Source: Macrostomum lignano
Taxonomy: Eukaryota
Length of the DNA stretch: 64,000 bases
Assembly: GCA_002269645.1 (NCBI GenBank)
Contig: NIVC01000158.1
Coordinates: 1 to 64,000 of the forward strand
Direction of reading: 5' to 3'
The first letter of the stretch is position 1. Every line of letters starts with the position of its first letter. The notes beneath the pieces are model-generated. The model had not been told where the DNA came from. It did not search any database and saw nothing but the letters and a program-made list of their open reading frames with translations. Made by a program: the position numbers and the translations under genes. Shown piece by piece: positions 10,469-63,639 of the stretch.

Positions 10469-11605
10469 GTGAAACGTTTCGATAAATATTAACTTGACAC
10501 ATTGATAAAGATATCGTAGATTCTTAAGACGGAATAATAAAGCAGTGCCAATCTTAATAATTGAAGCCGAAAAATTACGGCAAATAATATTAATAATGTT
10601 GCTTCAATATCTCGATAAATTTTCGTCTCTGACAAGTGGAAACTTGGATTATCGGATTATCGCCGTCCCTGATTTTCATTGCGCGCATATCATGCTACTT
10701 ACTTAGTAGCTAAAAAAGTTCAATCAAATAAAATTGGGCTACCTGTTTGCCTATTTTGCCAATTGATTAGTTACAATCGTGTCATTGATTTATTGCAATT
10801 TTGCTAACCCGATCGATTCCGACAATTATTTATATTTTTGTCTTATTTATTACATCATTTATTTTATTGTTTTGTTCTAATTTATTCGCTGGCCATACTA
10901 CTGTTGTTATTTAAGTAGCACGAAGTGAATCCAGCTATATTTTTTGACAAATTTTCTAACCTAATTAATATTGCTCAACGTCCGGGTTTTTGTTATTTAT
11001 ATTTCCAGTATTTATAGTACGCTCGTAATTAATCCAGTTTATTTATCATTCACGAAAAACTTCGCTATAGCGGAGGTGCCTTGCAATTTGATTCGCGTTG
11101 CCAGTTCCGCCTTGCCAACTTGTGTCACTTGTTTGTTTATAATTTGTGAACGAATTTAGTTTACTAAGTGAGGATCGGATATATTACGTTGTGCAATAAT
11201 TTTTGTGATTAATAAATAAATTAATGTTATTTTATTTTTTATTTCACAATATTCTTCCGAATAAGTTTTGCCGGCGTAAGGTGTATCTCATCTGTCTATA
11301 TAAAAATTGTCTATGAAATTGTATCTAATCAATTTTATCTTTATACGAAAATTTCAAACATTTAATGACTTTTTGTAATTTTTTTCTTCCCGTAATATTA
11401 TAATATTTGCTCTCTTACTGTGCTACATAACTAAGTTTACAAATAATAGAAGCAATTTAATACACTGAAATTGATTTGCTCATCTTGCTAGAAATATATC
11501 TATATAGGGACTAATTCTAATACTTCTATTTATGATATTTAAAATTGAAAATCTGTTTTCTGTTCTCTAATTTTTTGTTTTTATTTCTTTAATCACAGGT
11601 AAATA

Positions 11606-13939: not shown

Positions 13940-16900
13940 ATGTCACAAAAAGGAGGGCCATTGGATTCATTATTAGTTTGGGTAAGTATGTTGATTACTT
14001 TCTAAGCATTAACCTATGTTAAGACGTGTAGTGTATTTAGTTGTCTATTTATCAAATACCTAATGCACATTTTATCTCTTTATTCAGATTGAGTCCTTTC
14101 TATCTGATGGTACACAGTTACAGTATGAGGACCTGATGGAGAAGAAATACCTTTTCAATGCACTTCAACAGATGTCAGTTTTGATTTATATAATAAATAA
14201 ATAAAAACATTGAGTTAAATTTGAATATGTCAAATAGAACATTTAAAACATTTTCAGAGACCCGAGACCTCTATGGTCAGAGCCAATCGATGAGTGCTTA
14301 GACCAGGCCAGTCAGTTACACAATGCTTCAATTTTATATGTGCAGCTGCTCACTTGCTACGCTGTAAGCCTTGATTGCATATTTAGCAATATCTAAATTA
14401 TACTACTTTCAGTAGAAAACTTGTGATTTATTTTTATTTAGGAAACTCTCAATCAGACGGTACTCCTGCCTATGCTGGATCTGAATGCCTACGTAAACTA
14501 TGAAGAGGACCTTGGTGAGTGATAGAAAAAAACTTTTTAGGCCCAAAATTAGACAATAAATAAAAATATATGGCCATTGTTGCGTTTTAAACAGCCGCCT
14601 CGCAGCTGGAGATGCACCGGCTGCTCATGCTGTTTCTTGGAATTGCAATTCAGTGCAAACGCAAAGACGAATTCATCGCAGCGATGGAGACACTGCCAGA
14701 TGAAATTCAGGAAGACATCATGGAGAACTACAGGACTGTGAGCTTGTCCGCTTTCTTCCCAACATCTTCTTAAGAGGATTCTGGGCTTGCGTAGGCATGC
14801 ACTCACTGATTAGCAGCTTGTTGCAGCCAGCTTCCAGCAGCAGATTACAGGGATACAGGGACCTCTCTAGTCTGCGCCCCTGTAGCTGGTGCTCCCTCTG
14901 TAGCTGGTGCCCTCTCTGTAGCTGGTGCCCTCTCTGTAGCTGGTGCCCTCTCTGTAGCTGGTGCCCTCTCTGTAGCTGGTGCTCTCTCTGTAGCTGGTGC
15001 CCTCTCTGTAGCTGGTGCCCTCTCTGTAGCTGGTGCCCTCTCTGTAGCTGGTGCCCTCTCTGTAGCTGGTGCTCTCTCTGTAGCTGGTGCCCTCTCTGTA
15101 GCTGGTGCCCTCTCTGTAGCTGGTGCCCTCTCTGTAGCTGGTGCTCTCTCTGTAGCTGGTGCCCTCTCTGTAGCTGGTGCCCTCTCTGTAGCTGGTGCTC
15201 TCTCTGTAGCTGGTGCCCTCTCTGTAGCTGGTGCTCTCTCTGTAGCTGGTGCTCTCTCTGTAGCTGGTGCCCTCTCTGTAGCTGGTGCCCTCTCTGTAGC
15301 TGGTGCCCTCTCTGTAGCTGGTGCCCTCTCTGTAGCTGGTGCCCTCTCTGTAGCTGGTGCCCTCTCTGTAGCTGGTGCCCTCTCTGTAGCTGGTGCCCTC
15401 TCTGTAGCTGATGCCCTCTCTGTAGCTGGTGCCCTCTGTTCCACACTTTCACAGTTGTATTCGTAAATGCGCTCACTTACTATGAAATTGTATCCTTACT
15501 AACAGCTGGCTCAGCATCTGGTCCGTCTGGACGCGGCCGAAGCCAGAACTGGCGGCGCCGGCCTGCGCAAGTGCTGCAACGACCGGTTGGACTGCTTTAA
15601 GGTGACCACTAGCCAGTTGTGCAGCAATTTCTTTTAATTTGGTGCCATTTTCGGGGCTCTGTGATCAATAAATGCCATTTCATCGCAACCTTAAAATTTT
15701 TAAGCCAAATTGCTGATTTTACCGCCTTGTGGTGAATCTTCGCCTTTAGAGCTGAGTCCTCGCATTTAGAGCTGAATCCTCGCCTTTAGAGCTGAGTCCT
15801 CGCCTTTAGAGCTGAATTCTCGCCTTTAGAGCTGAGTCCTCGCCTTTAGAGCTGAATCCTCGCCTTTAGAGCTGAGTCCTCGCCTTTAGAGCTGAATCCT
15901 CGCCTTTAGAGCTGCTGAATATTCGTCTTTAGTATGTCCTCGTCTTCAGAACACTGCATCCTCGTCTTCAGAACACTGCATCCTCGTCTTCAGAACACTG
16001 CATCCTTGTCTTCAGAACACTGCATCATCGTCTTCAGAACACTGCATCATCGTCTTCAGAACACTGCATCCTTGTCTTCAGAACACTGCATCCTTGTCTT
16101 CAGGACACTGCATCCTTGTTTTCAGAACACTGCATCCTTGTCTTCAGAACACTGCATCCTTGTCTTCAGAACACTGCATCCTTGTCTTCAGCACACTGCA
16201 TCCTTGTTTTCAGAACACTGCATCCTTGTCTTCAGAACACTGCATCCTTGTCTTCAGGACACTGCATCCTTGTTTTCAGAACACTGCATCCTTGTCTTCA
16301 GAACACTGCATCCTTGTCTTCAGAACACTGCATCCTTGTCTTCAGAACACTGCATCCTTGTCTTCAGAACACTGCATCCTTGTCTTCAGAACACTGCATT
16401 CTCATACTTAAATCTCTATCAGAGCCAAATCCATCATTGTCAAGCAGTGCAGTCAGCGCCTCACACGTAGGTCACCACAATATGTTCAAACAACAGAAGT
16501 ACAGCGAGGCAGTGGAGGAGAAGTGCTACCTGGAGACGGTGGTGCTGCACTCGCAAGCTGCTGAGGAGTCCAAGCCGGGTTCTTCGCCAACGCCACCCTC
16601 GTCGCAGCAGTCGAATCCGGCCGACGTTGCCGCTCTGGACTCCGCCAATCAGCGCGCCGCCCAGCTGGCCGCCCAGCTGGAGGCAAAGACGGCCGAGGCG
16701 GCCAAACTGAACGAGAAGCTGCGCCGACAGAAGGACAAAGTGCAGCGTCTGAAAGCCACTGCAGCCAAAGTAAGCCCCCAGTTTGGTGCAATTTTTATTC
16801 CTAATAATGGGCTTTATTGACCTTTAATAACCTTAGAGTCAAAAGTTGACCTTCAGAGTCACAAGATAACCTTCGAAATCACAAGATAACCTTCGAAATC

Positions 16901-19900
16901 ACAAGATAACCTTCGAAATCACAAGATAACCTTCGAAATCACAAGATAACCTTCGAAATCACAAGATAACCTTCGAAATCACAAGATAACCTTCGAAATC
17001 ACAAGATAACCTTCGAAATCACAAGATAACATTCAAAATCACAAGATGACCTTTAGAGTCACAAGGTGATCTCGAAAGTCTCAAGGTATTTTCCAGTCTT
17101 TAGGTGATGTCCAAAGTCTCAAGGTAAATTAAGACTAGAGTCTAATCTCTATAGAGTCTATCATGTAATCTTTAGAGTCTCATGTAATCTTTAGAGTCTC
17201 ATGCAATCTCTAGAGTCTCATGTAATCTCTAGAGTCTATCATGTAATCTCTAGAGTCTCATGTAATCTCTAGAGTCTCATGTAATCTCTAGAGTCTCATG
17301 TAATCTCTAGAGTCTCATGTAATCTCTAGAGTCTCATGTAATCTCTAAAGTCTCATGCAATCTCTAGAGTCTCATGCAATCTCTAGAGTCTCATGCAATC
17401 TCTAGAGTCTCATGTAATCTCTAGATAGCTTCGAGTAATCTCTAGAGTCTCATGTAATCTCTAGAGTCTCATGTAATCTCTAGAGTCTCATGCAGTCTCT
17501 AGAGTCTCATGCAATCTCTAGAGTCTCATGCAATCTCTAGAGTCTCATGCAATCTCTAGAGTCTCATGTAATCTCTAGAGTCTCATGTAATCTCTAGAGT
17601 CTCATGCAATCTCTAGAGTCTCATGTAATCTCTAGAGTCTAATGTAATCTCTGGATAGCTTCGAGTAATCTCAGGAGTTTTAAGATGACCTTCAAATCCC
17701 AATACGTTGCAGCTCAGCCACTCATGTTTTAAAAGCATGTTTCAACATTTGCACTTTCAGGCCAATGCTGGCAGCGCACAGGGAGTTAAGATGGGCGCTC
17801 TGAATGAAGAGATCGAGCGACTGAAGGACAAGGCAAGCGCCTGACATTGATGCGTGCTTAGAAAATGAGATTTTTAAATCATGATGATTTTCTGAATCGC
17901 CCTGTACTCTATCGCACAGATCAGCAAATTCGAGAACATGGAAAAAGAGGTGTACACACTGCGACAGCGACAGACAGAGTTCGACTTCTATAAGAGTCGA
18001 GTTCAGGTAAATTCGGCTTGAGATTTTGAGAATAGAAGTTTTTACGCAAGAAAATGTACAATTGCATACTACTTATCAAACGTTCGTCAGTAGTGCATTG
18101 CAGTTTCTACATTGAATTCATCTGCAGGAACTGCGCACGGAGAACAGCCAGCTAGTTGAGGACCGGCAGCACTTCGAGGAGCTCCTGTACAGCAGCCGGC
18201 GCAAGGAGGAGGACGTCATCGAGCGCCTGGTCGAATGCCAGATGCGCTGCGACGAGCTGGCCGGACTGCGCGAGGCCGACGCCGAACGGTCGCGCCAGGC
18301 GCTGGAGGCGGCCGCGTCGGCTGGCGGTGAGCAGGCCGTGGCCCGAATTCGCGAACTCGAAGCCGAAGTGGACAGGTGAGAATTGTACAGGCCGCCTCGG
18401 ACTCATCATATACGAGTAGGTTTGAGTTAAATGATCTACAGGAGCAATGTACATTTGTAGGGCGCGGCAGACAATGTACATGGCAGCTTAAACCCTTCCC
18501 CACTCCCTCACACGTCAGGATAGGCTTAATGGGGTAGGCTACACGGGCGCTGATTGGACAAAAAATGAACCAATAGAAATCCGGGAAGAAAGAAGAAAGA
18601 TTGCATACTACTCGTATTGAATTAAGTAGCTTATGCTGATATTACTCGTATGTTGTATTTATCTCTTTCGTCAATTCCGTCAAAAACCTAAATTTTCTTC
18701 TTTTCTCAGTTGCTTCTTCTTTGGACCATGGCATCTCACCTGCTCCCTCTTTCAGCCTTGGCATCTCAGCTACTTATCAATTGAGCCATGGCATCTCAGC
18801 TACTTATCAATTGAGCCATGGAATCTCAGCTACTTATCAATTGAGCCATGGAATCTCAGCTACTTATCAATTGAGCCATGGAATCTCAGCTACTTATCAA
18901 TTGAGCCATGGAATCTCAGCCACTTATCAATTGAGCCATGTAATCTCAGCCACTTATCAATTGAGCCATGGAATCTCAGCTACTTATCAATTGAGCCATG
19001 GAATCTCAGCTACTTATCAATTGAGCCATGGAATCTCAGCCACTTATCAATTGAGCCATGGAATCTCAGCCACTTATCAATTGAGCCATGGAATCTCAGC
19101 TACTTATCAATTGAGCCATGGAATCTCAGCCACTTATCAATTGAGCCATGGAATCTCAGCCACTTATCAATTGAGCCATGGAATCTCAGCCACTTATCAA
19201 TTGAGCCATGGAATCTCAGCTACTTATCAATTGAGCCATGGAATCTCAGCCACTTATCAATTGAGCCATGGAATCTCAGCCATGGTGTCTTGTATTCGCC
19301 TATCTTTCCCGCAGGTTGCGCTCCACTGGGTCCACTGGAGCGGCCGCAAGCGGAGGCCCCAGCGCCAGCGACGACAAGCAGGAGCGATGGAAATTCCTCG
19401 AAGTAAAAAAGGAGCTGGTGCAGACCAGGCGCGAACTGGCTAAGGCGCGCAAACAGGCCGAGACGGACGCGCAGCGGGCCAAGCGCGCGGAGGCGCAACT
19501 GGAGACGGCGACGAAGGCGGGGGCGGACAGGGAGCACGAGCTGGTGGGCACGCGGCAGTCGCACGAGGAGCACGTGCGGGATTTGGAACGGCGAATCCAC
19601 GAGCTCACAAATCAGATTGTGCTGCTTAAGCGGAAGGGCTCCGAGGCGATGAAGGGACTGCGGGAGGCTGAGCTGGCCGAGATGGAGGTCATGTTCCAGT
19701 CGGTGCAGGAGCTCACGTCTCAGGTGAGTTCACGATGTTCTCAAATGAGCTGCGCCTTCTGTTAACAGAGTGTCTACAATCTAATTGTCTGCAAACTGAG
19801 TGTCTTTAGGTATATATTAGTGTCTGCAGGTGTCTATTAGTGTCTGCAGGTGTCTATTATTGTCAATCTATGCAGCAGACAAGCCAGCAACACTGCCACT

Positions 19901-20227
19901 GCCCATCTCGCACTGCCGCAGGTTTCCAGACTGAAGAACAATAACAAAATCCTGCGCCAGTCCTGCGACAAGCTGAAATCGGAGGTGTACAAAATATTCA
20001 CTATCGAGCAGGAGAACGAGCGACTGCTAGCGGAGAACCGGGAGCTGCGCAAAACCAAAGCTGCCGACTCCACAGCCCAGGACGAATGGGAGCTGGTGCG
20101 CAAGAAGAATCTCCAGCTAGAGGTTGAGAACAAGAAGCTCAGGCGTATTGTGGAATCGTTGAAGATGACATTGGTGCAGATTGATCCGTACAACAAGATG
20201 CGATACCACTACATTACCTCGCTGTGA
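13940..20227 (+). CDS. HOOK-domain coiled-coil protein (Hook/CCDC88 girdin-daple family), ~646 aa
   Basis: Twelve exons: 13940-13981, 14088-14173, 14258-14363, 14442-14514, 14595-14737, 15506-15601, 16497-16769, 17761-17832, 17920-18006, 18128-18375, 19315-19723 and 19922-20227. All splice phases are consistent. HOOK-type motifs are LDSLLVW, QIDPRP and [19 protein letters not shown]; the coiled coil contains [14 protein letters not shown]. Confidence 0.85.
14879..15438. repeat. 18-bp minisatellite (TGTAGCTGGTGCCCTCTC), ~31 units, Hook-like intron 5
   Basis: Directly visible; source of the ATERAP, QRGHQL and CSWCPL ORFs. Confidence 0.97.
15738..16400. repeat. Two adjacent minisatellites: 20-bp (CGCCTTTAGAGCTGAGTCCT, ~15738-15915) and 22-bp (TCCTTGTCTTCAGAACACTGCA, ~15935-16400), Hook-like intron 6
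   Basis: Periods measured from the sequence. Confidence 0.95.
16850..17690. repeat. Two adjacent minisatellites: 20-bp (ACAAGATAACCTTCGAAATC, ~16860-17050) and 19-bp (TGTAATCTCTAGAGTCTCA, ~17140-17680), Hook-like intron 7
   Basis: Periods measured from the sequence. Confidence 0.95.
18725..19283. repeat. 30-bp minisatellite (GAGCCATGGAATCTCAGCTACTTATCAATT), Hook-like intron 10
   Basis: Directly visible, ~18 units, ending about 30 nt before the acceptor. Confidence 0.97.
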
Positions 20228-21459: not shown

Positions 21460-22000
21460 GATCCTCAAATGGGAATCTTGGGAAGGGATCCTCAAATGGG
21501 GATCTTGGGAAGGGATCCTCAAATCAGGATCTTGAGAAGGGATCCTCAAATGGGATCTTGGGAAGAGATCTTCAAATGGGGATCTTGGGAAGGGATCCTC
21601 AAATGGGAATCTTGGGAAGGGATCCTCAAATCGGGATCTTGAGAAGGGATCCTCAAATGGGATCTTGGGAAGAGATCTTCAAATGGGGATCTTGAGAAGG
21701 GATCCTCAAATGGGATCTTGGGAAGGGATCCTCAAATGGGATCTTGGGAAGGGATCCTCAAATGGGGATCTTGGGAAGGGATCCTCAAATGGGGATCTTG
21801 GGAAGGGATCCTCAAATGGGGATCTTGGGAAGGGATCCTCAAATGGGGATCTTGGGAAGGGATCCTCAAATGGGGATCTTGGGAAGGGATCCTCAAATGG
21901 GGATCTTGGGAAGGGATCCTCAAATGGGAATCTTGGAAAGGGATCCTCAAATGGGAATCTTGGGAAGGGATCCTCAAATGGGGATCTTGGAAACAGATTC
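21460..22000. repeat. 26-27-bp minisatellite (GGGATCTTGGGAAGGGATCCTCAAATG) between the convergent Hook-like and FH genes
   Basis: Directly visible. Confidence 0.95.
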
Positions 22001-22117: not shown

Positions 22118-25100
22118 TCAAGCCGGGCCCAGCATATTCTCGGGCCGAACCCATCTATCGAAATCGTCGCCGCTGAGCAGGCCGAGGTCCAGCGCCGCCT
22201 GCCGCAGGCTCAGCCCGTTGGCGTGCGCGTGCTTAGCGATGGCAGCCGCCTTGTCGTAGCCAATATGCGGATTCAGAGCCGTCACCAGCATCAGCGACTG
22301 CGACATCAGCTCGGCTACACGGTCGGCGTTCACTTGGGTGCCCGACACGCAGCGATCGGCGAAGCTGACGGAGGCGTCGGCTAGGAGCGTCATCGAGTGG
22401 AGCACGTTGCGAACGATCAGCGGCTTGTACACGTTGAGCTGCAGGTGGCCTTGGCTGCCCCGATTGTCACGGCCACGTGATTACCCATCACCTGGCAAGC
22501 CACCATTGATAGAGCCTCGCATTGGGTCGGGTTCACCTTGCCTGAAGCACCGGGTGCGGGAATAAGTTAATTAAAATACATTAGCTGCATATTGATTGGG
22601 TTGGATTCCAGCTTAGATTCCTAGATTTCCGCTTAGACTCTCCTCTCAACTGACCCCTCACCTGACCCCCTCATTTGACCCCTCACCTGACCCCTCACCT
22701 GACTCCCTCACCTGACCCCTCACCTGACTCCCTCATTTGACCCCTCACCTGACCCCTCACCTGACTCCCTCATTTGACCCCTCACCTGACCCCTCACCTG
22801 ACTCCCTCATCTGACCCCTCACATGACTCCCACACCTGACTCACTCATTTGACCCCCTTACCTGACCCCTGCATTTGACCTGATCTCACCTGAGACACTC
22901 ATTTGGCACCCCACCTGATCTCCTCATTCGACTTCTTTGCTGACCACCTCATTTGCCTCCTCTCAGCCGATCGCCCTCTCACCTGATCGCCCTCTCACCT
23001 GATCTCCCTCTCACCTGATCTCCCTCTCACCTGATCTCCCTCTCACCTGATCCCCCACTCACCTGATCTCCCTCTCACCTGATCCCCCACTCACCTGATC
23101 TCCCTCTCACCTGATCCCCCTCTCACCTGACCCCCGCTCACTTCATTTCCCGTCTTACGTGACCCCACTCCCACTTACACCGACCCCCTCACCGGGCATG
23201 ATGCTGGATCCGGGCTCATTCTCTGGTAGCGTCAGCTCGCCCAGGCCGCAGCGAGGCCCGGAGCCGAGCAGGCGGAAGTCGTTGGCCAGCTTGGTGAGCG
23301 AGCAGGCCGTCGTGTTGAGCGAGCCGCTGAGCTCCACCAGTGCGTCGTGGCTGGCCAGCGCCTCGAACTTGTTGGGGGCCGATCTTGGAGCGGAAAATGA
23401 GCAGACAATAATTCACCGAGCAGATTAGCAAAATAGCAGATACCACAAGCTGAAATCCTATCCCCAAATCCCTTATGAACCAATCTGAAATCCCATTCCC
23501 CAGATCCCCTATAAACCAAGCTGAAATCCCATTCCCCAGATCCCCTATAAACCAAGCTGAAATCCCATTCCCCAGATCCCCTATAAACTAAGCTGTAAAT
23601 CCCATTCCCCAGATCCCCTATAAACTAAGCTGAAATCCCATTCCCCAGACCCCCTATAAACCAAGCTGAAATCCCATTCCCCAGACCCCCTATAAACCAA
23701 GCTGAAATCCCATTCCCCAGACCCCCTATAAACTAAGCTGAAATCCCATTCCCCAGACCCCCTATAAACTAAGCTGAAATCCCATTCCCCAGATCCCCTA
23801 TAAACCAAGCTGAAATCCCATTCCCTAGATCCCCTATAAACCAAGCTGAAATCCCATTCCCTAGATCCCCTATAAACCAAGCTGAAATCCCATTCCCAAG
23901 ATCCCTATAAATTCTCCCTAAAGTACAAAGTTCCCATTAAAGCATCCGGACATCCAAAGCCTGTAAAATCCCAGAAGAGACGCCACAGGCGCTGGTCCCT
24001 TCGTTCCGCACCTGAACGGCAGGCCGGTCAGGCGTGCCAGCGCGGCGGCCACATCTTCGCCGAATCCCGGCCAGCTGTTCAGCCCGGTGCCGACCGCGGT
24101 GCCGCCGATGGCCAGCTGGTGGACGTCAACTAAGCTGGCATCGATTCGGCGCAGGTCGCAGTCGAGCTGGTACACGAAGGCGCCGAACTCCTGGCCGACA
24201 GTGAGCGGAGTGGCGTCCTGCAGGTGAGTCCGGCCAAGCTTCACTACGCCCTGGAATTCGTCGGCTTTAGCAGCCAGAGCGTCGCGTAGTCGCTTCAACG
24301 AAGGCAGCAACCGGCCAGCGGCTTCCATGGCAACGGACACGTGCATAGCGGTTGGAAACACGTCATTTGAGCTCTGCCCCATGTTCACGTGATCGTTGGG
24401 GTGCACCGGAGTCTTGGAACCAATCTGGCCGCCGAGTAGTTCGATAGCCCGATTGCTGAGCACCTCGTTCATGTTCATGTTGGTCTGCGTGCCCGAGCCA
24501 GTCTGCCACACAACCAGGGGGAAGTGCCGGTCGAGCTGGCCGGAGATCACCTCGTCCGCGGCGCTGCAGATGGCCGACTGGACGGCCGGGTCAAGGCCAT
24601 GCTGACCGTTCACAGTGGCGGCCGCTTTCTTCACGTAGGCCAGGCCACGAATCACCTGTGACTGCGGAGATTCAGAGGGGGCACCCACGTTTAAAGTGTT
24701 CTGCGTATTGGCGCCGAACTATTACCGCAAATGAGGCCGATTTGTGAAGTGACAGTTTGTGAAGTGACCAGTTTGTGAAGTGACAAGTTTGTGAAGTGTC
24801 CAGTTTGTTAAGTGACCAGTTTGTGAAGTGACCAGTTTGTGAAGTGACAAGTTTGTGAAGTGTCCAGTTTGTTAAGTGACCAGTTTGTGAAGTGTCCAGT
24901 TTTTGAAGTGACCAGTGTGTGAAGTGTCCAGTTTGTGAAGTGACCAGTTTGTGAAGTGACAAGTTTGTGAAGTGTCCAGTTTGTTAAGTGACCAGTTTGT
25001 GAAGTGTCCAGTTTTTGAAGTGACCAGTGTGTGAAGTGACCAGTTTGTGAAGTGACCAGTTTGTGAAGTGACCAGTTTGTGAAGTGACAAGTTTGTGAAG

Positions 25101-27111
25101 TGTCCAGTTTGTTAAGTGACCAGTTTGTGAAGTGTCCAGTTTGTGAAATGACCAGTTTGTGAAGTGACCAGTTTGTGAAGTGTCCTGTGTGTGAAGTGTC
25201 CAGTTTGTGAAGTGACCAGTTTGTGAAGTGTCCTGTGTGTGAAGTGTCCAGTTTGTGAAGTGACCAGTTTGTGAAGTGTCCTGTGTGTGAAGTGTCCAGT
25301 TTGTGAAGTGACCAGTTTGTGAAGTGTCCAGTTTGTGAAGTGACCAGTTTGTGAAGTGACCAGTTTGTGAAGTGTCCAGTTTGTGAAGTGACCAGTTTGT
25401 GAAGTGACCAGTTTGTGAATTGTCCAGTTTGTGAAGTGACCAGTTTGTGAAGTGACAAGTTTGTGAAGTGTCCAGTTTGTTAAGTGACCAGTTTGTGAAG
25501 TGTCAGTTTGTGAAGTGTCCAGTTTGTGAAATGACCAGTTTGAGAAGTGACCAGTTTGTGAAGTGTCCTGAGTGTGAAGTGTCCAGTTTGTGAAGTGTCC
25601 AGTTTGTGAAGTGACCAGTTTGTGAAGTGACCAGTTTGTGAAGTGTCCAGTTTGTGAAGTGACCAGTTTGTGAAGTGACCAGTTTGTGAAGTGACAAGTT
25701 TGTGAAGTGACCAGTTTGTGAAGTGACCAGTTTGTGAAGTGTCCTGTGTGTGAAGTGTCCAGTTTGTGAAGTGACCAGTTTGTGAAGTGTCCTGTGTGTG
25801 AAGTGACCAGTTTGTGAAGTGACCAGTTTGTGAAGTGTCCTGTGTGTGAAGTGTCCAGTTTGTGAAGTGACCAGTTTGTGAAGTGTCCTGTGTGTGAAGT
25901 GTCCAGTTTGTTAAGTGTCCAGTTTGTGAAGTGACCAGTTTGTGAAGTGACCAGTTTGTGAAGTGACCAGTGTGTGAATTGTCCAGTTTGTGAAGTGTCC
26001 AGTTTGTGAAGTGTCAGTTTGTGAAGTGTCCAGTTTGTGAAATGACCAGTTTGTGAAGTGTCCAGTTTGTGAAGTGTCCAGTTTGTGAAGTGACCAGTTT
26101 GTGAAGTGTCCATTTTGTGAAGTGTCCAGTTTGTGAAGTGACCAGTTTGTGAAGTGTCCAGTTTGTGAAGTGACCAGTTTGTGAAGTGACCAGTTTGTGA
26201 AGTGTCCAGTTTGTGAAGTGACCAGTTTATGAAGTGTCCAGTTTTTGAAGTGTTCAGTTATCTGATAGGTGTCCATTTATGAAGTGTGTAGTTTGCAAAG
26301 CTCTTACTCGTAGATCTATAGTTTTACAGAATATTTACAACTTAAGCGACAAGGTCTTGATTTATTCTAATTTATTGGAATAAAATTGCCTAAGAGCCTT
26401 TATGTTATTATCCAAGTAAACCATATTCAATACATATCAATCTCAAAATAGAATATAATTATCTAAATTACGGTCGAAAGCCTTTTTTCTTGCGACAGCG
26501 GTACGCTTCATTTGTCATTTTAAATGCCATTCTTACTTGATGCCAAAGAGATCTCTGAAAGATATGACAAGTCTGACACCAATATATTGATAGGCTCGCA
26601 ACAACATGAGCGCAGAATCAGAATCTCAGACAGACAAAAAATCGCATATAGATCAGGTTTTATTGCACCGCTCTGGACCTCAAGAATTATTTTATAACAT
26701 GCGCATAAATTATGCAGTCAACTTGGAATATCTGGCTCTGGACAACTGCGCAGCACTGGTGCAAAAATCTCCATTATATCTATGCATTGCTTTGACTCTT
26801 ACTCTCCCCCTCCCTATCTCTACTAGCTGTTCCTGTGCTCAAGCAATAGACACAAATATACAGTAATAACCAACACTTACAGGCATTCTGTCTGCATCTC
26901 GGCCAATATTGAAATTGATCAGTGACCTGGCAGTCTGGGCGCCGTAATATGCCCAGGAGGGCACTGCTATCTCGCCAAAGGTGTCCCGTTCTATGCGAGT
27001 GTCAGCGGCGCCAGCCCTGACTGACATGCTGGCAATGACAGGATTGACTTGGCGACCCGATAGCAACTGCTGTAGCAATAATTTGCTGCTGTGCCTGGCT
27101 AGTGCAAAACC
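22118..27111 (-). CDS. FH: Class II fumarate hydratase (mitochondrial/cytosolic); start codon unresolved; apparent 1-nt deletion in the last exon
   Basis: Exons 26881-27111, 24012-24661, 23193-23383 and 22118-22541. Motifs include [65 protein letters not shown], the signature [16 protein letters not shown] and [13 protein letters not shown]. Confidence 0.96.
22650..23135. repeat. 12-15-bp C-rich repeat (TGACCCCTCACC, grading into TCTCACCTGATCCCC), last FH intron
   Basis: Directly visible. Confidence 0.9.
23440..23910. repeat. 36-bp minisatellite (GCTGAAATCCCATTCCCCAGATCCCCTATAAACCAA), FH intron
   Basis: Directly visible; 12-aa period in the spurious ORF. Confidence 0.95.
24740..26290. repeat. 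16-bp minisatellite (CAGTTTGTGAAGTGAC / CAGTTTGTGAAGTGTC), ~1.5 kb, FH intron
   Basis: Directly visible; source of the [16 protein letters not shown] ORFs. Confidence 0.97.
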
Positions 27112-27713
27112 CTGCAGTGTGAGAGATACTGTTTTTGCATAATGGATTTTGGCTTTACCAGTTTTATTGTCAATTTAAATTATAGGATGCAGAATTTCCA
27201 TACTTCTATAAGGCAATACACTAACCACTGAATGTTGAACTCAGTATTCAATAGTTTGAAACTTTTCAGCTAATTTCTAAGAATGCCAAATATGAGATGC
27301 AAAATTAATGTTTAAAATTATCTAAATATCTTTCAAATTTAAAATGACAACAATACAAATGATGTCACACAGTTTGTATTAGCCTTGGTAATATAGAATC
27401 TTTTTAATATACTTCTATTGAAAAAAAAACTATAAAATTGTTTTTCAGAGCATTGAGTTGGAAAAGTTTTGCAAAAATAGAAAGGTAAAGGAAATACAAA
27501 CAATAGAAATTTAGTATGTACTTAGACAGCAAAAACAAATCAGTCAAAAGACATTTAAACATTTTTAGTCTGTTCTTTCTTCTAAATATCCCTAAAAATG
27601 AGTCTAAAATGTTTGAATAATACTTTTAGAGATTTCCAATGATTAACATGTCATTAGAAGGCATGAACAAGACCTTTAAAAAGACATACTAAAACATTTT
27701 GCATTTCCTAGGC

Positions 27714-30000
27714 AATAGTGTAGTACACATAGTCAGTTTCTAGATTCCTATAATCTGGTTAGCAGAAGTTTTCTGTCCATTATCAGTTGTGCAAAAAGTG
27801 CAAACAGTTTGGCATGTTTGTCTGCACTATTGATGTATTATATTTCAATTTCTCCTTGGTTACTTGAAACCAATGTAGTTTCACATCATACAAATACAGT
27901 GCAGTCAATATTGTTTGCACATGTGGAAATCATTATTTCAAGTCTAGCAATCAATTTAGTTATTATATGATGCAATTCATACCTTTAAGCTCAATGACTA
28001 CCACTGCTAGCATGTTTTACTTAAAATAGGGTTGCATTCAATGGACTTAGTGCTTTCTGTGATTATTTGACTTGCATCCCAAAATGGCTATGTTACTCTA
28101 TAGTCAGTAGTATACATTTGTATGTTTCTAGACTATTGGGTAGTATTAGTAGTATTACGTAGTGTTGGGGGTGTTGGGGGTGTTGGAGGGGGATTAATTG
28201 TGTTTAAGAGTGTTTTTTGGTTCCCCCCTCGTGTCCCCCCTCTAGCCCTTCAAATCGTCTGTTTGAAAAGGGGTTCTGGGTCTAGAAACGTACAAATGTA
28301 TACTACTATAGTCATTGCTTTATTTTGCACTGAAAATTTATTCCTATGATTCAATATGGCTAAGCAAGTCTATAGAAACCACAGATACTAGAATAACTAG
28401 ATGTGTTACTTGCAAAAAATGTGTTTCTCTACTCTTTTTTCAGTAGCAGAATTAGCATTTTTTGCCTTAATAAAAGTGAAATTAAAATTGATCTACTTTA
28501 AAACGAAATTTTTAAGTTTTTAAAGCTGCAAAATTTGTCTGTGCCTAATTCTACAAGCAGGCTAATTAAATAAGCATGTCTGCTGAGTTTTACCAGTTCA
28601 AAAATAAACCAATTTAAGCCTTAAGACTGTAGAAAACTATAACAATGTAAAATTCCCAAATTCAGTGCTTGGCATAGAGAGCAAGACAGAATTAGTGCTG
28701 GCGCCCAGACATCTCTCTACTGCTCTCTTATTGGCTAAGCTAGATTGGGCCGCCCCCCCCCCCCCTAGGCTGAGTTTTGTCCATCTTGCATTCATTTGTG
28801 TACATTGAGTCAACAAATGCTTGTTCATTCTTAACCCCATATGCTCTTGAGGCTGCAAGCCCTAAGGAAGGAAAGGAATTTTATCTTCTACATCAAATTT
28901 ATATTACATTAGCATAGACAACTACTGAAAAAAAAGTAGAGGCTCTACTTTTTCACAATTTTAATTGCGAGTGACATATCTAGTTATTCTAGTATCTGTA
29001 GTAGAAACCAAACAACAAATACTGATTGGCAACAACTAGTTGATGCCTTTGAAGCTGGCAACAAGTCTGACAACTGGAAGGTGTTGGCTAATGTCCTAAA
29101 CATCAAGAATTCCATTACCAAGCTACCTGGGTTCAAGAAGCTCAGACTGCCAAGTTGAGGTGTAGTAGAAGATAGTCTATTATTAATAGTATCCTAAATT
29201 GGCACCAAGAAACCATTTGTAACTCTCATTAAAGTCAAGGAGCTTCTATAGTAGAGACTGCCCAGAAAGCCACCTGTTCTATCTCTATCATTGCCAGAGT
29301 GCTGGAAGGATAGCTCATCACCTGCAAAGTTGCAGGCAAGGATGCCGATGCTCCTCTAGAGAGAAATTGGTGTGACATTATTGTTGCCTAGCAGCAGCTT
29401 GCCAAACCTGCCATGGTACATCAAATAGCTGATGCTGAAAATAATTGCTAGAATGAAGGCCTCAGTCTCTGTGACTGGCATACAAGGATTCTAATCAAAA
29501 TAGGCAGAACCGCTTTAAACAACATCACTATTCAGAAGTGTCAAAACTGATATGGCCATCTGCACCACTTTATGCCCAAATTTCTGGTAGGTAAGCCAAT
29601 CATCAATGGATAATTAATAATGAAATCTTTCTGATATTGTTGGTATGATTTTGCATAGCATTGAACCAGACAGATGAAATTTATAAAAATAAACTGAAAA
29701 TGATAAAGGAACATGCCTTTGATTTATAGGATTTGAAAACTGATTGCTACAGTCAATAATGATTTCCACTTGTGCAAACAAAATTGTTGTACACAATATT
29801 GACTGCACTGTATTGGTACAATGTGAAGCTACATTCATTTCAAGTGGACAAAGAGAAATTGAAATATAATACATCAATAATGTAGACAAACATGCCAAAC
29901 TGTTTGCATTTTTTGCACAACTGATGATAGATGGAAAAACTCTATAAATCAGATTGTAGGAATCTAAATTCTAGAAACTGACTATGTGTACTATGCTATT
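27714..30000 (+). mobile_element. Decayed Tc1/IS630-superfamily-like element with ~250-bp inverted repeats and transposase remnant
   Basis: 27714-~27957 is the imperfect reverse complement of ~29738-30000 (AATAG..TAGTACACATAGTCAGTTTCTAGA). The segment ~29020-29590 translates, with stops and frameshifts, to RQQLVDAFEAGNKSDNWKVLANVLNIK...IARVLEG*LITCKV...PLERN...ITIQKCQN*YGHLHHFMPKFL. This resembles IS630/Tc1-like transposases from recollection, not from a search. Confidence 0.6.
28382..28998. mobile_element. MITE nested in the element above, ~70-bp imperfect TIRs starting CAGATACTAGAATAACTAGAT
   Basis: 28382 onward matches the reverse complement of the segment ending at 28998, which is followed by TA. 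Confidence 0.7.
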
Positions 30001-30549
30001 AATCAGGAAATGCTATAAAACAAAATACTATAGACTAATAGACCAAGGTGAATATCATATATCAAACATACAAAATATAAATTTTGTTGTTTTTAAAAGA
30101 AATTTATATTATTATATTATCTTAATATTTTTAGAAAATATCATTAAAATTTGTTTTATTAAGTAACTAGTTGCTTTGCTAAACCATTTTGACTATATAT
30201 TTTTTACCTCTAAACTTTTGCCCATAGGCCTTCAAACCAATTTGGTTGCAGACTAATATTAGTATTAGTAGATTTAGTATAGGTAGATAGGGATCGGTAA
30301 CAGTGTAAATCTTTGTAGTTCCTGATTTCAGCACAATTGAGCAGGTATGATAATTGTAGTGATGCTAATGTATAATAATGCATACTAATAATATTTTAAT
30401 ATATAAAATGTAATTAATAATCCGCCATATCCTCATACAAAATCATAAAACTATAGGCGACTTCCACGCATCTTAGAAAATGAAAATTAGAAATACAAGA
30501 GCTCAAAAATAGGTTTCTTTAAGGTTCCGCAAAACTTTGGCTGGCAAAC

Positions 30550-30835
30550 CTCACAAGAAAATTTCCTGCAAGCATAATTCGGCAAGCAAAGTTCGGCAAG
30601 CAAAGTTCGGCAAGCAAAGCTCGGCAAGCAAACTTCGGCAGGCAAAATTCCGCAAGCAAAGTTCGGCAAGCAGACTTCGGCAAGCAAAATTCCGCAAGCA
30701 AAGTTCGGCAAGCAGACTTCGGCAAGCAAAATTCTGCAAGCAAAATTCGGCAAGCAGACTTCGGCAAGCAAATTTCCGCAAGCAAAAGTCCCGCAAGCAA
30801 ACTTCGGCAAGCAAACTTCTCGCAAGCAAATTTCA
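30550..30835. repeat. ~14-bp minisatellite (TTCGGCAAGCAAAG)
   Basis: Directly visible. Confidence 0.9.
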
Positions 30836-38014: not shown

Positions 38015-41000
38015 ATGTCGTCCAAGGACAAAGACCGCAAAGGTGGCAGCGGCGGCAGCACCAAGGATAGCAAGAAGGGCGGCAAGCTGAGCCATCTGTT
38101 TCGCGGCGGCACCCCGAAACCCGACGCTATTGAAGACCAGCGGCCGCCAGCCAGCGATCATGTTGACGCCCCCGCTCCGCCTAGCGCCTCGGCCAATGCC
38201 TCCTCAAACTCTAAAGTGGAATTCTCCAAAGAAGAGCTTGAGCAAGGCGTCTCCGAGATGGTTAAAGACTTAAACCTGGACGCTAAATCGTTTCTAAACA
38301 AAGACAAAGGCGCCCTGGCTATTATGCTGCAGAACTACCGAGAGTACAAGCAGTCCAAAGGCGACTCCGGGCCCTATGCTGGCATTGTAAAGAAGCTCAG
38401 TAAACCCGACAGCCTGTCGCTGGAAGAGCTTGAAAAGAATGTCAGCCAACTGCGCGTCATGCTTGGCACGCTAACCATCACTGACATTAAAGGCTTTGCC
38501 GAGTGCAGCGGCCTGCAGACTCTCATGGCCGTGTTAGAATCCTGCATTAAGGGTATTGTTCATAGTAGCGAGGCTGGCAAACTGCCAACCTACGATGGTA
38601 AAACTAGTCCAGCAAGTCCTTGGTACAAGGTGTGCTACAATACCCTGCTGTGCGTTAGGAAGTTTTGCGACAATAGTTTCGGCATGACGCATCTGCTGCG
38701 GCATCCCAAGGTGAGTTGGGCTGGGAGACGATTGAGGCAGTGTACAAAGGGATTCGGGATTAAGCTGCGGTGAGGATCAGGATGGAAGATGGGACAGGCT
38801 GGTGGAATGGGGGATTAAATAGGAAGGGTGAAGGACTAGATAGGGAGAGAGGGATGCCGGGATGTTGGTTGGATAGGAGATTAAAGATCGGGGGAAGCAT
38901 GATTAGATAGGAAGAATACATGATTAGTGAGGATACATTATTAGATATGAAGGATAAATGACTAGATAGGACGATACTTGACTAGATAGAGAGGATACAT
39001 GAGTAGATAAGGAAGATACATGACTAGATAGAGAGGATACATGAGTAGATAAGGAAGATACATGACTAGATAGAGAGGATACATGAGTAGATAAGGAAGA
39101 TACATGACTAGATAGAGAGGATACATGAGTATATAGGGAAGATACATGACTAGATAGGATACATGACTGGGTAGGGAGGATGCATGATTAGATGTTGAGG
39201 ATATATGATTAGTGAGGATAGATGACTAGATATGGCTTGAATAATTTAATTCGCAGTAATTTGGGTCTTTGAATGTAAAATAACAAACATAATGTCTGAC
39301 ATTTAAAACTCTGTTGGTGGTGGTCGGATGTTGGTGGAGAAGCCCAATCCAGTAAAAAAGGTTGTTTTGAGTAATAAAGAAGTTAATGGGATTGCTAGGA
39401 TAGCTGTTTAGTTAGGAAAGAAAATGAATTAGACGGTAGACGTCACGGTGATTATGGTTCACTTCGCCAACCTTGCTCAAGGTCGTGTCCACCATAGTGG
39501 AGTCGCTCAACATCGTGCCCTTCCTGGCGCCGAACGAGTACGCTGTTGGCAGCTGCATATTCGAAATCATGTCGTCATTTCTATTCTATTACAAGTCTAA
39601 AACACAGGAGCTTGAAAGAAACAAGGTGGAGAATGTTAACACCATAGTATTGCGAGCTTTCAGCACTTCCCGGAATCTGCAGGCCGATAGCAGCAACAGG
39701 TTCTTTCCAATCAAGAATACCCTGGATAAAACCTGTTCGCTGCTTAACCGGCCTGAATTAGGCGACGAATTGCGAGTGAAAGTGTACGAATTGACCCGCG
39801 ATTGCCTGCTGTTTATTAACACGCTGATTGACAGCTGCGACGATGTCGACCATCGAATGGCTGTACGAACCGAACTGTGGTCTCTGGTGCTCAAGGACCG
39901 CTGGAAGGTGCTTGAGAGCACACTGTCAAAGGCGCCAGATGGATCCTGCCGCACCCAGTTCGACATCTTTCAGGACAAGGGCGACCAAGTAAGTTTTGTT
40001 GCTTGAATGTACTTTTTGGGCAGACCTTCTCTGCCACCGCTGCCCCAGTTCTCTGCCACAGCTGCCCCAGACCTCTGCCACCGCTGCCCCAGACCTCTGC
40101 CACCGCTGCCCCAGACCTCTGCCACCGCTGCCCCAGACCTTCTCTGCCACCGCTGCCCCAGTTCTTCTCTGCCACCGCTGCCCCAGTTCTTCTCTGCCAC
40201 AGCTGCCCCAGTTCTTCTCTGCCACAGCTGCCCCAGTTCTTCTCTGCCACCGCTGCCCCAGACCTTCTCTGCCACCGCTGCCCCAGTTCTTCTCTGCCAC
40301 CGCTGCCCCAGACCTTCTCTGCCACCGCTGCCCCAGTTCTTCTCTGCCACCGCTGCCCCAGTTCTTCTCTGCCACCGCTGCCTCAGACCTTCTCTGCCAC
40401 CGCTGCCCAGACCTTCTCTGCCACCGCTGCCCCAGACCTCTGCCACCGCTGCCCCAGACCTTCTCTGCCACAGCTGCCCCAGACCTTCTCTGCCACAGCT
40501 GCCCCAGTTCTTCTCTGCCACAGCTGCCCCAGTTCTTCTCTGCCACAGCTGCCCCAGTTCTTCTCTGCCACAGCTGCCTCAGACCTTCTCTGCCACCGCT
40601 GCCCAGACCTTCTCTGCCACCGCTGCCCCAGACCTCTGCCACCGCTGCCCCAGACCTTCTCTGCCACAGCTGCCCCAGTTCTTCTCTGCCACAGCTGCCC
40701 CAGTTCTTCTCTGCCACAGCTGCCCCAGTTCTTCTCTGCCACAGCTGCCCCAGTTCTTCTCTGCCACAGCTGCCCCAGTTCTTCTCTGCCACCGCTGCCC
40801 CAGTGGTCACCCCTGCCCCAGTGGTCACCCCTGCCCCAGTGGTCACCCCTGCCCCAGTGGTCACCCCTGCCCCAGTCCTTCAGTGGTCACATTTTTAAAG
40901 GTAAATCGTGCGCTGTAATGGTGATGCCATTCGATTAGCATAGTATGCTTTGATTATGGTTATTCAGAATTGGTTTCATTACAATTTTATTGTGGAGATT

Positions 41001-44000
41001 CTATTTAGTAGTAAATGTCAAATCTAAGCTATATTCAGGTAATTGATAGTCTTATCAATATTTAGCATTCCTAGGCTAAGTGCAGTATAATTCTATAAAT
41101 ATAGAACTTGTAGGCTGTATTAAAAGCTATAAAAAATACGCACAGCGCCTGCTTTCATTATCGCTTGTATCCGATATACATCAGACTTTTTTGTGTAGCA
41201 TATTTGAATATTTACTGACTAGTGCTATTCTGTTAGTTAAAGTAATGCGTCTGTAATAGCATAGCAACAGCGATTAATTATGCTAGGCTGTTTATTTTCT
41301 ATAGTTTGTTTATTTCCATCCGTAGTCCCAGTCAGCTTTTGATGCCCAGCCCTAAATAGCTATGCGAATAATTTCATGATTAATGAATTAATTAATATGT
41401 CAGGATGCCTCGGAGATCAGCGAACGTTTCGACGGCTGTCTGTCAAACACGGAGATGAACGATCCCAGATTCTGTTTCGATTTGCTCTGGCGCTCGCTTG
41501 AGGGCACCGAAGCTGATTGGTTTTTTAAAAGTATTCTCCAACACCTGCTCTACGTGCCGTTCAACAATTATCAGAAAGACTATTTCAAGCTGTTTGAGGA
41601 GTTGATATCGCAGCTGGTGTTGACTAAGGATGGCACTTATCCAGACTTCAGGTGCGTCCTTTGGGGAGTGCAGCAGCTTCTGCAGTGTACAGTGGGAGTG
41701 CAGTAGCTTATGCAGTGTACAGGGGGAGTGCAGTAGCTTCTGCAGTGTACAGGGGGAGTGCAGCAGCTTCTGCAGTGTACAGGGGGAGTGCAGTAGCTTA
41801 TGCAGTGTACAGGGGGAGTGCAGCAGCTTCTGCAGTGTACAGTGGGAGTGCAGTAGCTTATGCAGTGTACAGGGGGAGTGCAGTAGCTTCTGCAGTGTAC
41901 AGGGGGAGTGCAGCAGCTTCTGCAGTGTACAGGGGGAGTGCAGCAGCTTCTGCAGTGTACAGGGGGAGTGCAGTAGCTTATGCAGTGTACAGGGGGAGTG
42001 CAGCAGCTTCTGCAGTGTACAGGGGGAGTGCAGTAGCTTATGCAGTGTACAGGGGGAGTGCAGTAGCTTCTGCAGTGTACAGGGGGAGTGCAGCAGCTTC
42101 TGCAGTGTACAGGGGGAGTGCAGTAGCTTATGCAGTGTACAGGGGGAGTGCAGCAGCTTCTGCAGTGTACAGTGGGAGTGCAGTAGCTTATGCAGTGTAC
42201 AGGGGGAGTGCAGTAGCTTCTGCAGTGTACAGGGGGAGTGCAGCAGCTTCTGCAGTGTACAGGGGGAGTGCAGTAGCTTATGCAGTGTACAGGGGAGTGC
42301 AGTAGCTTCTGCAGTGTACAGGGGGAGTGCAGCAGCTTCTGCAGTGTACAGGGGGAGTGCAGTAGCTTATGCAGTGTACAGGGGGAGTGCAGTAGCTTCT
42401 GCAGTGTACAGGGGGAGTGCAGCAGCTTCTGCAGTGTACAGTGGGAGTGCAGTAGCTTATGCAGTGTACAGGGGGAGTGCAGCAGCTTCTGCAGTGTACA
42501 GTGGGAGTGCAGCAGCTTCTGCAGTCTACAGGGGGAGTGCAGTAGCTTCTGCAGTGGGCAGGGGGAGTGCAGTGGACGGGCCAAATATTCTGCATACTGA
42601 ATCTACGAACTCCCTTATTGCCACTGATCCCAGGTCGCGAGATTTGCGCACTTTTTTCGACTTCGACGCGATCAAGAGGGAGATGGTTACCATGGAGGAG
42701 CAGGAGCGGGAGCGGCTGCAGGCCAAGCTGCAAGAGAAAATCAAGCTGGAAGAATGCGATCGGGAGGCCACTCTGCAGGCTCTACGTGACAAGGCCGCAA
42801 ATTTGGAGGCGCAACTTGAAGAGGCCCGCAGCCGCCTGCGCGAAATTCAAGCTGGCGCCGCCGCTACAGGCACCGGTGCAACTGGGACTGCTGTACCTCC
42901 GCCGCCTCCGGGACCGCCTCCGCCCCGCCTGGTGGCGCTCCGCCTCCGCCACCACCGCCTCCGCCGCCTCCTCCGCCGCCGCCACCACCACCTGGCGGCG
43001 GCCCGCCACCTGCGCCTCCGCCCCCGCCACCTCCCGGCGGTGGTCCGCCACCTGCGCCTCCGCCGCCGCCACCTCCCGGCGGTGGCCCACCACCCCCGCC
43101 GCCGCCTCCGCCTCCGCCTGGCGTCCCAGGCGCTCCACCGCCGCCTCCGCCGCCCGGCGGCCTGGCCGGCTTCCTTGGCTTTAACAAGCCGCCAGCCCTG
43201 CCGCACGGTCTCAAAAGCAAGCCGGACTATCAGCTGGCTAATCCGACTAAGCGGCTTAACTGGCAGGCGGTGAATCCTAGAGAATTGAGCAAGGATTCTA
43301 TCTGGGTTCAGATTGGCAACGCTGAGCAGGAGTTCAGCGATCCCCAGCTGGTTAGCCAACTTGGCGAGCTCTTCTCCACGAAGCCGCCGCCGAAGAAGCT
43401 AGCAGCTGGCGACGATGGCGGCGCTGGAGGCGGCAGCGGCGCAGGTGGTGGCGGCAAGTCTAACAACAAGAAGACCAAAGAGTGCCGCGTACTCGACCCG
43501 AAATCTGCCCAAAACCTGGCCATCACGCTCGGCTCGCTGCGCCTGTCATTCGAAGAGATCAAGCGTCGTATTGTTGAATGCGACGAGGAGCGATTGTCGC
43601 TTGGCCAGGTTGAGCTGTTGCTCAAATCCCTGCCAGAGCCGAGCGATATGAAAAAGATCTCGGCTCTGAAAGTTGAATACGACGATCTGGCCGAGCCGGA
43701 ACAGTTTCTGCACTGCCTGGCCGAGGTGAAGAATGCCAGAAATCGGCTGGAGAGTTTGCAATTCAAATTGCAATTTTCTGACCAGTTGGAGGAAGTCAAG
43801 CCAAGCTTTATGGCCGTCACCGACTGTTTGAAGGTTAATTGATTCTTAAATGAAATTATGTGCTTACGCTCGGTCGCGACATTTAATTATGCTATAAGAA
43901 AACTATTAGCTCGAAATAGTCACGTTGCATGCCACCCCAACTAAACGCAGACCGCACGCCCCAGACCAGCCACCCACCCCAACTGAACGCCATAAAACCC

Positions 44001-63061: not shown

Positions 63062-63639
63062 TTTGCTAAGGTTTGATGGCGGCTGACTGCTTGTTGCACT
63101 GGCTGCAATGCTTTGTTCAGGCAAGAGATAATGCTTCAATTACATTTATCAATGCAGCAGAAGGCTCAGAGATATTTTTCAGTCTCTATTGTTCCGATCT
63201 GCAGCTGCTTAAGTCTGAAAGCGTACAGACTCTGCTTTCAGCTTAAAAGCAGCCAATTGCAGAATGAGAGGGGGTTATAGTTTCTGGAATGTTGTGTACA
63301 CTATAGCTAGCTCTGTCACTGTGGAGGTGGAATGCTACCGCAGATTTTAAGTAAAGTTTTGCTTTGCCTAAATATATATCTCTCTCTAACTCTCCTTCTC
63401 TCTTGTGCTCTCTGTTTCCCGCTTTTTTACACGCATTCAGTTCGGCTTTGTGGCGTACACTACGAGAATGAACGATCTTCTTGTAGCCAACCGTGGTCTC
63501 TGGCTTGGGGTAGCTGACTGGCTTAAATTAAAGTGTCACCGTTTTTATCTGTGTCTTTTAGGCCTCGAGTAAGAATAACGATCGGCTTGAGGTCTCGTAT
63601 GTAAAACAAGTATGAGATTCACAGGTTAATTAATAGATT

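Follow-up and report, generated by a model that had tools for sequence, protein, structure and literature searches.

A start codon most likely supplied by the spliced leader opens the presequence-bearing form of a fumarase in Macrostomum lignano

The stretch of DNA analysed here (the window) comprises the first 64,000 nucleotides (nt) of contig NIVC01000158.1 from the flatworm Macrostomum lignano and carries, on its minus strand, a class II fumarase gene with four coding exons, delineated by tblastn (using a human FH sequence as the query) and by reading of the exon junctions. Coding exon 1 (27111-26881, 231 nt) is in phase 0 at both ends, has the donor GTAAGT at 26880 and begins where the GenBank coding sequence (CDS) begins, at 27111. 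Exon 2 (24661-24012) has tandem acceptors 6 nt apart, cag/TCACAG/GTG (24655-24664), and may therefore start at either 24661 or 24655; both resulting protein versions are on record, the GenBank models with the residues SQ and the older UniProt models without them. Exon 3 (23383-23193) ends by encoding ...GSSIMPG, the first half of the fumarase signature, and the complete GSSIMPGKVNP (pattern GSSxMPxKxN) is assembled across its junction with exon 4 (22541-22118), which closes with a stop codon at 22120-22118. Pfam recognises PF00206 Lyase_1 (1.5e-105, residues 46-377) and PF10415 FumaraseC_C (8.4e-26) in the 498-residue product. The spliced model shares 62-68% identity with mitochondrial FH from vertebrates and nematodes, in alignments that cover 92-100% of the length, and, after repair of a single frameshift described below, is 100% identical over its full length to the GenBank M. 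lignano proteins P0010 and P0130. Judged by its sequence, the product is clearly a class II fumarate hydratase (FumC/FH).

The same assembly, GCA_002269645.1, contains three paralogous fumarase loci: Mlig006789g1 on NIVC01000882.1 (L001), Mlig012043g1 on NIVC01000808.1 (L002) and the window locus itself, Mlig022850g1 (L003). The record of the latter is the exact reverse complement of window positions 12417-37111, and window coordinates are therefore record coordinates. Protein searches turned up no further fumarase gene of M. lignano beyond these three loci. In exon 4 of the window copy, a G run at 22461-22458 has four G as opposed to five in L002; this 1-nt deletion shifts the frame and leads to a premature stop at 22419-22417, where the 398-residue GenBank product P0011 ends. 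The lesion may be either a homopolymer assembly error or a real pseudogenising change. Minisatellites are found in each fumarase intron and in both flanks (24741-26252, 23446-23911, 22640-23141, 21460-21990 and 30554-30834), for example a 16-mer repeated 95 times in intron 1 and a 36-mer repeated 13 times in intron 2, and the array lengths vary among the three loci.

The 5′ boundary of exon 1 deserves a closer look. There the minus strand reads ...tatctctcacactgcag/GGTTTTGCACTAGCC..., with the acceptor AG at 27113-27112 and the first exon base at 27111, so that ...tatctctcacactgcag joins GGT TTT GCA in phase 0. The following 84 nt (27111-27028) encode 28 residues, including two Arg and one Lys but not a single Asp or Glu, and contain no ATG in any of the frames. 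The first in-frame ATG, at 27027-27025 (gccagcATGt, with A at position −3), is the candidate start of a presequence-less form; the older UniProt models A0A1I8HBP8 and A0A1I8HLW9 (468 residues) indeed begin at this methionine, with MSVRAG. On the far side of the acceptor, this frame runs on without a stop for about 21 codons before it meets a TAA, and there is no in-frame ATG there either. The original prediction had described a phase-0 acceptor at 27112/27111 followed by a stretch with no acidic residues and no in-frame AUG before Met 27027; sequence and translation agree with it on each point, as does the CDS start in GenBank. An in-frame acceptor alone is expected by chance in one case out of three, and an open stretch of 28 codons is not rare, so neither is significant by itself.

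The annotation of this boundary is telling in its own right. The GenBank CDS of BOX15_Mlig022850g1 starts exactly at 27111, has Gly as its first residue and is flagged as 5′-partial. The CDSs of L001 and L002 are likewise partial and start with the same codon; only one 5′ end is on record for each of the three loci, the CDS being the sole feature recorded. The M. lignano annotation (Mlig_3_7) is based on RNA sequencing (RNA-seq): reads containing the spliced leader (SL) were trimmed and mapped, their peaks were used by TBONE to cut transcripts, and open reading frames (ORFs) were then called with TransDecoder (PMC5730564). A transcript trimmed of a leader that ends in a start codon would therefore yield a 5′-partial ORF from the first base after the acceptor, exactly as seen here.

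The spliced leader of M. lignano has the properties needed for such an arrangement. The species has a single SL of 35 nt, CGGTCTCTTACTGCGAAGACTCAATTTATTGCATG, which ends in ...TTATTGCATG with a terminal ATG, and the motif enriched at its trans-splice acceptors is [T/C]TNCAG (PMC8629364). The fumarase site, CTGCAG/G (acceptor CTGCAG at 27112-27117, with the outron at higher coordinates), matches this motif; the same hexamer is present in L002, while L001 has TTGATG. With the SL joined to exon 1, the sequence would read ...UUGC AUG GGU UUU GCA; the leader's AUG falls in frame, and no other AUG is available ahead of the internal Met. The original prediction hinged on the host SL ending in AUG, which it does. 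Its proposal of an SL-created M-GFALAR start is likewise strengthened by the in-frame SL AUG, the motif-fitting acceptor, the annotation ending at this very base and, as described next, a genomic ATG at the same spot in L001. As for the leader itself, the 35-nt SL sequence (allowing up to 3 mismatches) is absent from the 64-kb window, and an Rfam scan of the window at gathering thresholds found no SL RNA, small nuclear RNA or transfer RNA. The gene identifiers Mlig022850, Mlig006789 and Mlig012043 were not mentioned in the literature or supplementary tables that we searched.

The three loci were also compared around exon 1. At the exon 1 boundary, L002 and L003 read ...cacactgCAG/GGTTTTGCA, whereas L001 reads ...cacattgATG/GGTTTTGCA. 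In other words, L001 has lost the acceptor AG and on the same three bases has a genomic ATG that opens the M-GFALAR... frame. Nevertheless, the GenBank model of L001 begins at GGT, immediately after the ATG, with no AG at that point. This indicates that the model boundary was set not by splice-site logic but by multi-mapped, SL-trimmed reads coming from the identical exon of the other copies. Had the change gone from CAG through AAG to ATG, presumably no intermediate would have lacked both an acceptor and a start codon, and in either direction only one critical step would be needed. We also considered whether ...ATTGATG in L001 was derived by conversion from a trans-spliced mRNA (with the SL end ...ATTGCATG), and rejected this idea: the similarity ends after 7 nt, the alignment with L002 is gapless and no SL sequence is present further upstream.

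Exon 1 is identical in all three loci at each of its 231 positions, including the 84 positions preceding the internal Met. By comparison, the difference between L001 and L003 is 8.5% across the 200 upstream nt and 5.8% across the initial 600 nt of intron 1. At the rate of the flanks, the pre-Met 84 nt should have accumulated 4-7 differences, but there are none. The switch from 5-8% divergence to zero differences occurs exactly at the 27111 boundary, and this is where the constraint on the sequence appears to start. About 60 nt upstream of exon 1, L001 has an 11-nt indel, which rules out a longer conserved reading frame. In exons 2-4 of L001, one of the eight substitutions changes an amino acid, a pattern expected of a copy under purifying selection. 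Between L002 and L003, not a single substitution is seen from 1 kb before exon 1 to 600 nt after it (locus positions about 9000-10830); further upstream they are about 4-5% diverged. Around exon 1 they differ only by small length changes, and those that we examined are in homopolymer runs. Separately, L001 has an out-of-frame upstream ORF (uORF) encoding MQKQYISH (locus positions 9972-10003), the TGA of which overlaps the main ATG as TGATG, an arrangement resembling termination/re-initiation; the same uORF in L002 and L003 enters exon 1.

If translation starts at the SL AUG, the resulting N-terminus has the layout seen in other animal fumarases. The 29-residue extension (including the SL Met) has no Asp or Glu, three Lys and Arg residues in total, one His, nine Leu and Ala residues, and the motif LQQLL of the φ-x-x-φ-φ type. 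For comparison, there are four acidic residues among the first 29 of the MSVRAG form. On composition alone, the peptide would be consistent with mitochondrial targeting. We surveyed 16 other animal fumarases and found that they have an N-terminal extension of 4-76 residues (mostly 20-43) followed by a Met located 3-10 residues before R.E.DT(F/M)G. In M. lignano, the internal Met is 10 residues before RIERDTFGE, but the animal-type layout of extension plus Met would be obtained only if translation begins at the SL AUG. The only Arg in the vicinity lies nine residues before this Met and ten before the Ser that follows it; the spacing SGRQ-x7-M is also found in one Caenorhabditis fumarase. We presume that N-myristoylation of M-G-F-A-L-A is unlikely, given the aromatic residue after Gly.

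Taken together, these observations are best explained by a start codon that the gene itself lacks, and we consider it likely that the SL AUG starts the presequence-bearing fumarase, the full explanation including leaky scanning. The pre-mRNA of the window copy would be trans-spliced at CTGCAG/G (27112/27111) to the 35-nt SL, the last bases of which, AUG, would land in frame directly before GGU UUU GCA and initiate translation. The mature mRNA would then encode a 499-residue precursor with a basic, acid-free presequence as its first 29 residues, probably a mitochondrial targeting signal. The Met at 27027 corresponds to the conserved second Met of animal fumarases and would give rise to a presequence-less cytosolic/nuclear form. 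The two forms would be produced mainly by leaky scanning on a single mRNA. The initiation contexts fit this idea: the first AUG (uugcAUGg with the SL, auugAUGg in L001) has U at −3 in both cases and is weak, while the second (gccagcAUGu) has A at −3 and is strong. We favour leaky scanning over a choice between SL and non-SL transcripts because the first AUG is weak, the second is strong, no AUG lies between them and L001 has its first AUG hard-wired. Indeed, the genomic ATG in L001 argues that what matters may be the layout of the two AUGs itself. We infer the joining of the SL at 27111, initiation at its AUG, mitochondrial import driven by the peptide and the origin of the two forms mainly by leaky scanning.

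There are several points that weigh against this interpretation. Trans-splicing at 27112/27111 rests on the annotation boundary and the motif, and the SL AUG is expected to be in frame by chance in a third of trans-spliced genes. Parasitic flatworms often use the same acceptors in both cis- and trans-splicing (PMC12582326), and it is possible that some of the fumarase transcripts have an upstream non-coding cis exon. Gene conversion could account in part for the identical exon 1 of the three copies, as L002 and L003 lack substitutions from −1 kb to +600. As for the presequence, it has just three basic residues, and its hydrophobic moment is not above that of its shuffled versions, although this method fails to discriminate even some bona fide presequences. 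Furthermore, the usual context at the equivalent Met in other animals is R-M followed by Ala or Ser, whereas M. lignano has S-M/S, without the R-2 cleavage context of most other animals. Finally, exact look-ups of M plus GFALAR... (with or without SQ, in the Y or H variant) in a collection of 15 billion proteins gave no match, and a query consisting of the first 156 residues, counting the SL Met, yielded no hit from M. lignano, although that search is insensitive to short queries. The full MSVRAG...SQ forms were not matched by exact look-up in the same collection either. That protein search is word-indexed: given 77 or 156 N-terminal residues, it failed to recover the identical GenBank proteins that the full-length query did find, and for this reason its short-query negatives carry little weight. 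The 77-residue peptide of exon 1 produced only 9 short matches, mostly to fragments of bacterial-type fumarases.

Of the other explanations, the one that fares best makes trans-splicing a switch: SL-spliced transcripts would give the mitochondrial form, other transcripts would give the cytosolic form from the internal Met, and RNA processing would set the ratio. The non-SL transcripts might retain the outron, have a cis-spliced non-coding 5′ exon or start inside exon 1. It is true that a transcript lacking the SL would have its first in-frame AUG at 27027. An out-of-frame ATG in the outron (27138-27140, minus strand) opens a uORF that terminates inside exon 1; trans-splicing would remove it, while in its presence re-initiation at the internal AUG is conceivable. 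In addition, a motif scan finds a second [T/C]TNCAG match, CTACAG, within exon 1 at 27070-27075, where about 0.15 would be expected by chance in 84 nt. This sequence match is a candidate alternative trans-splice site; if it were used, the exon would begin at 27069 in phase 0. Acceptors shared between cis- and trans-splicing are common in parasitic flatworms (PMC12582326), human FH uses alternative transcript 5′ ends (PMC6068284), and there are precedents in Echinococcus granulosus TGR (Agorio et al. 2003, cited in PMC12582326) and in the isoleucyl-tRNA synthetase of Trypanosoma brucei (PMC3273800). However, one 5′ end is annotated per locus, with no second class of transcripts. L001 keeps the two-AUG layout with a hard-wired ATG and no acceptor, making a choice of SL unneeded, and a weak first AUG followed by a strong second one, with no AUG in between, would suffice for dual initiation on one mRNA. 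All in all, we regard a switch as unlikely.

A more elaborate version of this idea seems to us a shade less probable still. Here, the partitioning of the enzyme would be regulated at the level of RNA processing, by using the SL at 27111 or skipping it, with the three paralogues dividing the task and one of them hard-wired. SL addition there would install the first AUG and yield the mitochondrial form, while a skipped site would leave just the internal AUG or a defective presequence and yield the cytosolic/nuclear form. Skipping could occur via a cis-spliced non-coding exon, through outron retention with re-initiation after the uORF, or by use of the internal CTACAG. Were this true, no earlier case would exist of an SL-donated start codon that switches a conserved dual-function enzyme between compartments. 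The paralogues would, in addition, capture the passage of a start codon from genome to SL or back in a single step, the exchange of NAG/G and ATG/G.

It is improbable, in our judgement, that the main story is a division of labour among the paralogues, in which L001 (with its genomic ATG and a conventional 5′ untranslated region (UTR) containing a uORF) and the SL-dependent L002 and L003 differ in expression or regulation, and the window copy is dying. The ATG/CAG difference between the copies, the presence of the frameshift only in the window copy and the signs of purifying selection on L001 (eight exon substitutions, one amino acid change) all speak in its favour. On the other hand, the frameshift involves a single base of a homopolymer and, the assembly being based on PacBio reads, may be artefactual; moreover, the same presequence is encoded by all the copies.

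We find it quite improbable that the 84 nt are simply 5′ UTR. In that case, the true start would be the internal Met, the extension would be unused or a by-product, and import would occur by other means or be served by the L001 copy only. The older gene models do begin at MSVRAG, the presequence is only modestly similar to a mitochondrial targeting signal, and an SL AUG falls in frame by chance one time in three. However, in the MSVRAG form the conserved core is preceded by just 10 residues, of which two are acidic, leaving no room for a targeting signal, and no other fumarase gene of M. lignano turned up. Moreover, the 84 nt are constrained as strongly as the coding exons, and L001 has evolved or kept an ATG exactly where it opens the GFALAR frame. 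Lastly, an SL AUG that is in frame and not followed by a stop must extend the protein whenever it is recognised.

The competing model of the original prediction was a cis-spliced first exon at 30.84-30.92 kb. The ORF is indeed there: MQLSTKRFITTFSFCLNAL (MQLSTKRF...; 30918-30840, minus strand) abuts a 14/42-mer minisatellite at 30554-30834. As a coding exon we rejected it: in L002 it has a 2-nt internal deletion and a 6-nt deletion of the 3′ end at the putative donor, in L001 ATGCAG is replaced with ATGAAT and about 120 nt are inserted, and the divergence is like that of the flanks. That an AUG comes from this or a still more upstream cis-spliced coding exon is thus highly improbable: although the ORF starts with ATG and has a GT after codon 19, and cis use of acceptor 27112 is conceivable, a frameshift disrupts the candidate in L002 and the insertion interrupts it in L001, it is AT-rich, lies beside a minisatellite and diverges like non-coding flanks, none of the three loci is given such an exon by the RNA-seq-guided annotation, and the loss of AG and presence of ATG at the exon boundary in L001 would be left unexplained.

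Initiation at an SL AUG and mitochondrial/cytosolic variants made by trans-splicing are both already known, and the arrangement that we favour, an SL-donated first AUG followed by a genomic second one, has relatives in several systems. In Schistosoma mansoni, the SL AUG is in frame in 28% of trans-spliced transcripts and is required by more than 40 complementary DNAs (Cheng, Cohen, Ndegwa & Davis 2006, J Biol Chem 281:733, as cited in PMC9851317). As far as the citing account describes them, the S. mansoni genes resemble the fumarase gene in that the SL ends in AUG and the recipient exon, which starts in phase 0 and has an open frame, contains no AUG itself, so that the initiator must be provided by the SL. 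Unlike S. mansoni, M. lignano is a free-living, early-branching macrostomorph, its ATG-bearing paralogue provides an internal evolutionary control, and SL-AUG use is deduced here from sequence. The papers on the M. lignano SL and annotation (PMC8629364, PMC5730564) contain, as far as we found, no statement on the SL AUG as an initiator. Another flatworm case is TGR of E. granulosus, a single gene whose alternative trans-spliced mRNAs lead to mitochondrial and cytosolic variants (Agorio et al. 2003, J Biol Chem 278:12920, cited in PMC12582326). As summarised in the citing paper, in TGR too trans-splicing is tied to forms with and without a mitochondrial leader; by contrast, the fumarase has only one annotated mRNA form. 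In T. brucei, isoleucyl-tRNA synthetase is dually targeted by alternative trans-splicing (Rettig et al. 2012, PMC3273800), with the position of the SL deciding whether the presequence is included. The acceptor-like motif inside fumarase exon 1 is a candidate for a similar role, but the T. brucei SL donates no start codon, both AUGs of the synthetase being genomic.

Among fumarases, the closest parallel is the rat liver enzyme, for which a single mRNA with two in-phase AUGs and leaky scanning have been proposed; human FH relies on alternative transcription starts and yeast FUM1 on reverse translocation (PMC6068284). As in rat, the candidate presequence in M. lignano is followed by an internal Met a few residues before the core, and the weak-then-strong AUG contexts fit. 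The difference is that in two of the three M. lignano copies the first AUG lies outside the gene; dual localisation here is a candidate property. What appears to be new, as far as we found in the literature, is the link to fumarase in M. lignano and the ATG/CAG swap between paralogues. If an SL-donated start is indeed used, 5′-partial M. lignano models that begin at trans-splice sites in GenBank may turn out to be complete once the SL AUG is added. Targeting peptides would then escape localisation predictions that take the first genomic Met as the start, as the 468-residue UniProt fumarase models do. The sister copies, with CAG in some and ATG in the other, suggest that a genomic and an SL-donated start may be interchangeable at single-base resolution, which would help account for the strong conservation of the terminal AUG in flatworm SLs. 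An SL-donated start would also add a fifth means of making the presequence-bearing fumarase to the four known routes to its dual localisation, namely two genes, two promoters, two AUGs and reverse translocation, and in an animal tractable by transgenesis.

The surroundings of the fumarase gene bear on where its transcript begins. No same-strand gene is found within 10 kb upstream, and none is called there at any of the three loci. The next gene (38015-46562, plus strand) is divergent from fumarase and encodes a Diaphanous-type formin with a Drf_GBD domain, a proline-rich stretch and an FH2 domain in two exons. The empty 10 kb and the divergent formin imply that fumarase is not a downstream gene of an operon; its outron therefore should begin at its own promoter, somewhere in the 27.1-38 kb region. 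Within this region, which the original prediction called a transposon nest, there is an inverted repeat pair (27701-27919 and 29788-30013) with arms of about 220 nt that are 85% complementary and 1.9 kb apart. The pair is present at all three loci and is therefore older than their divergence. On the other side of fumarase, a gene for a 646-residue HOOK_N-domain protein (13940-20227, plus strand) is annotated as convergent with it; this neighbour, too, is found at all three loci, and the duplication therefore spans at least about 25 kb. The formin introns contain long minisatellites, at about 39.9-42.5 kb and 44.0-45.0 kb. Further along the window, a GC-rich ORF of 330 residues (53718-54710, plus strand) has several hydrophobic stretches and a receptor-like look with no Pfam match, and exons of a Galactosyl_T/Fringe-like glycosyltransferase are located at 60535-63139 on the minus strand.

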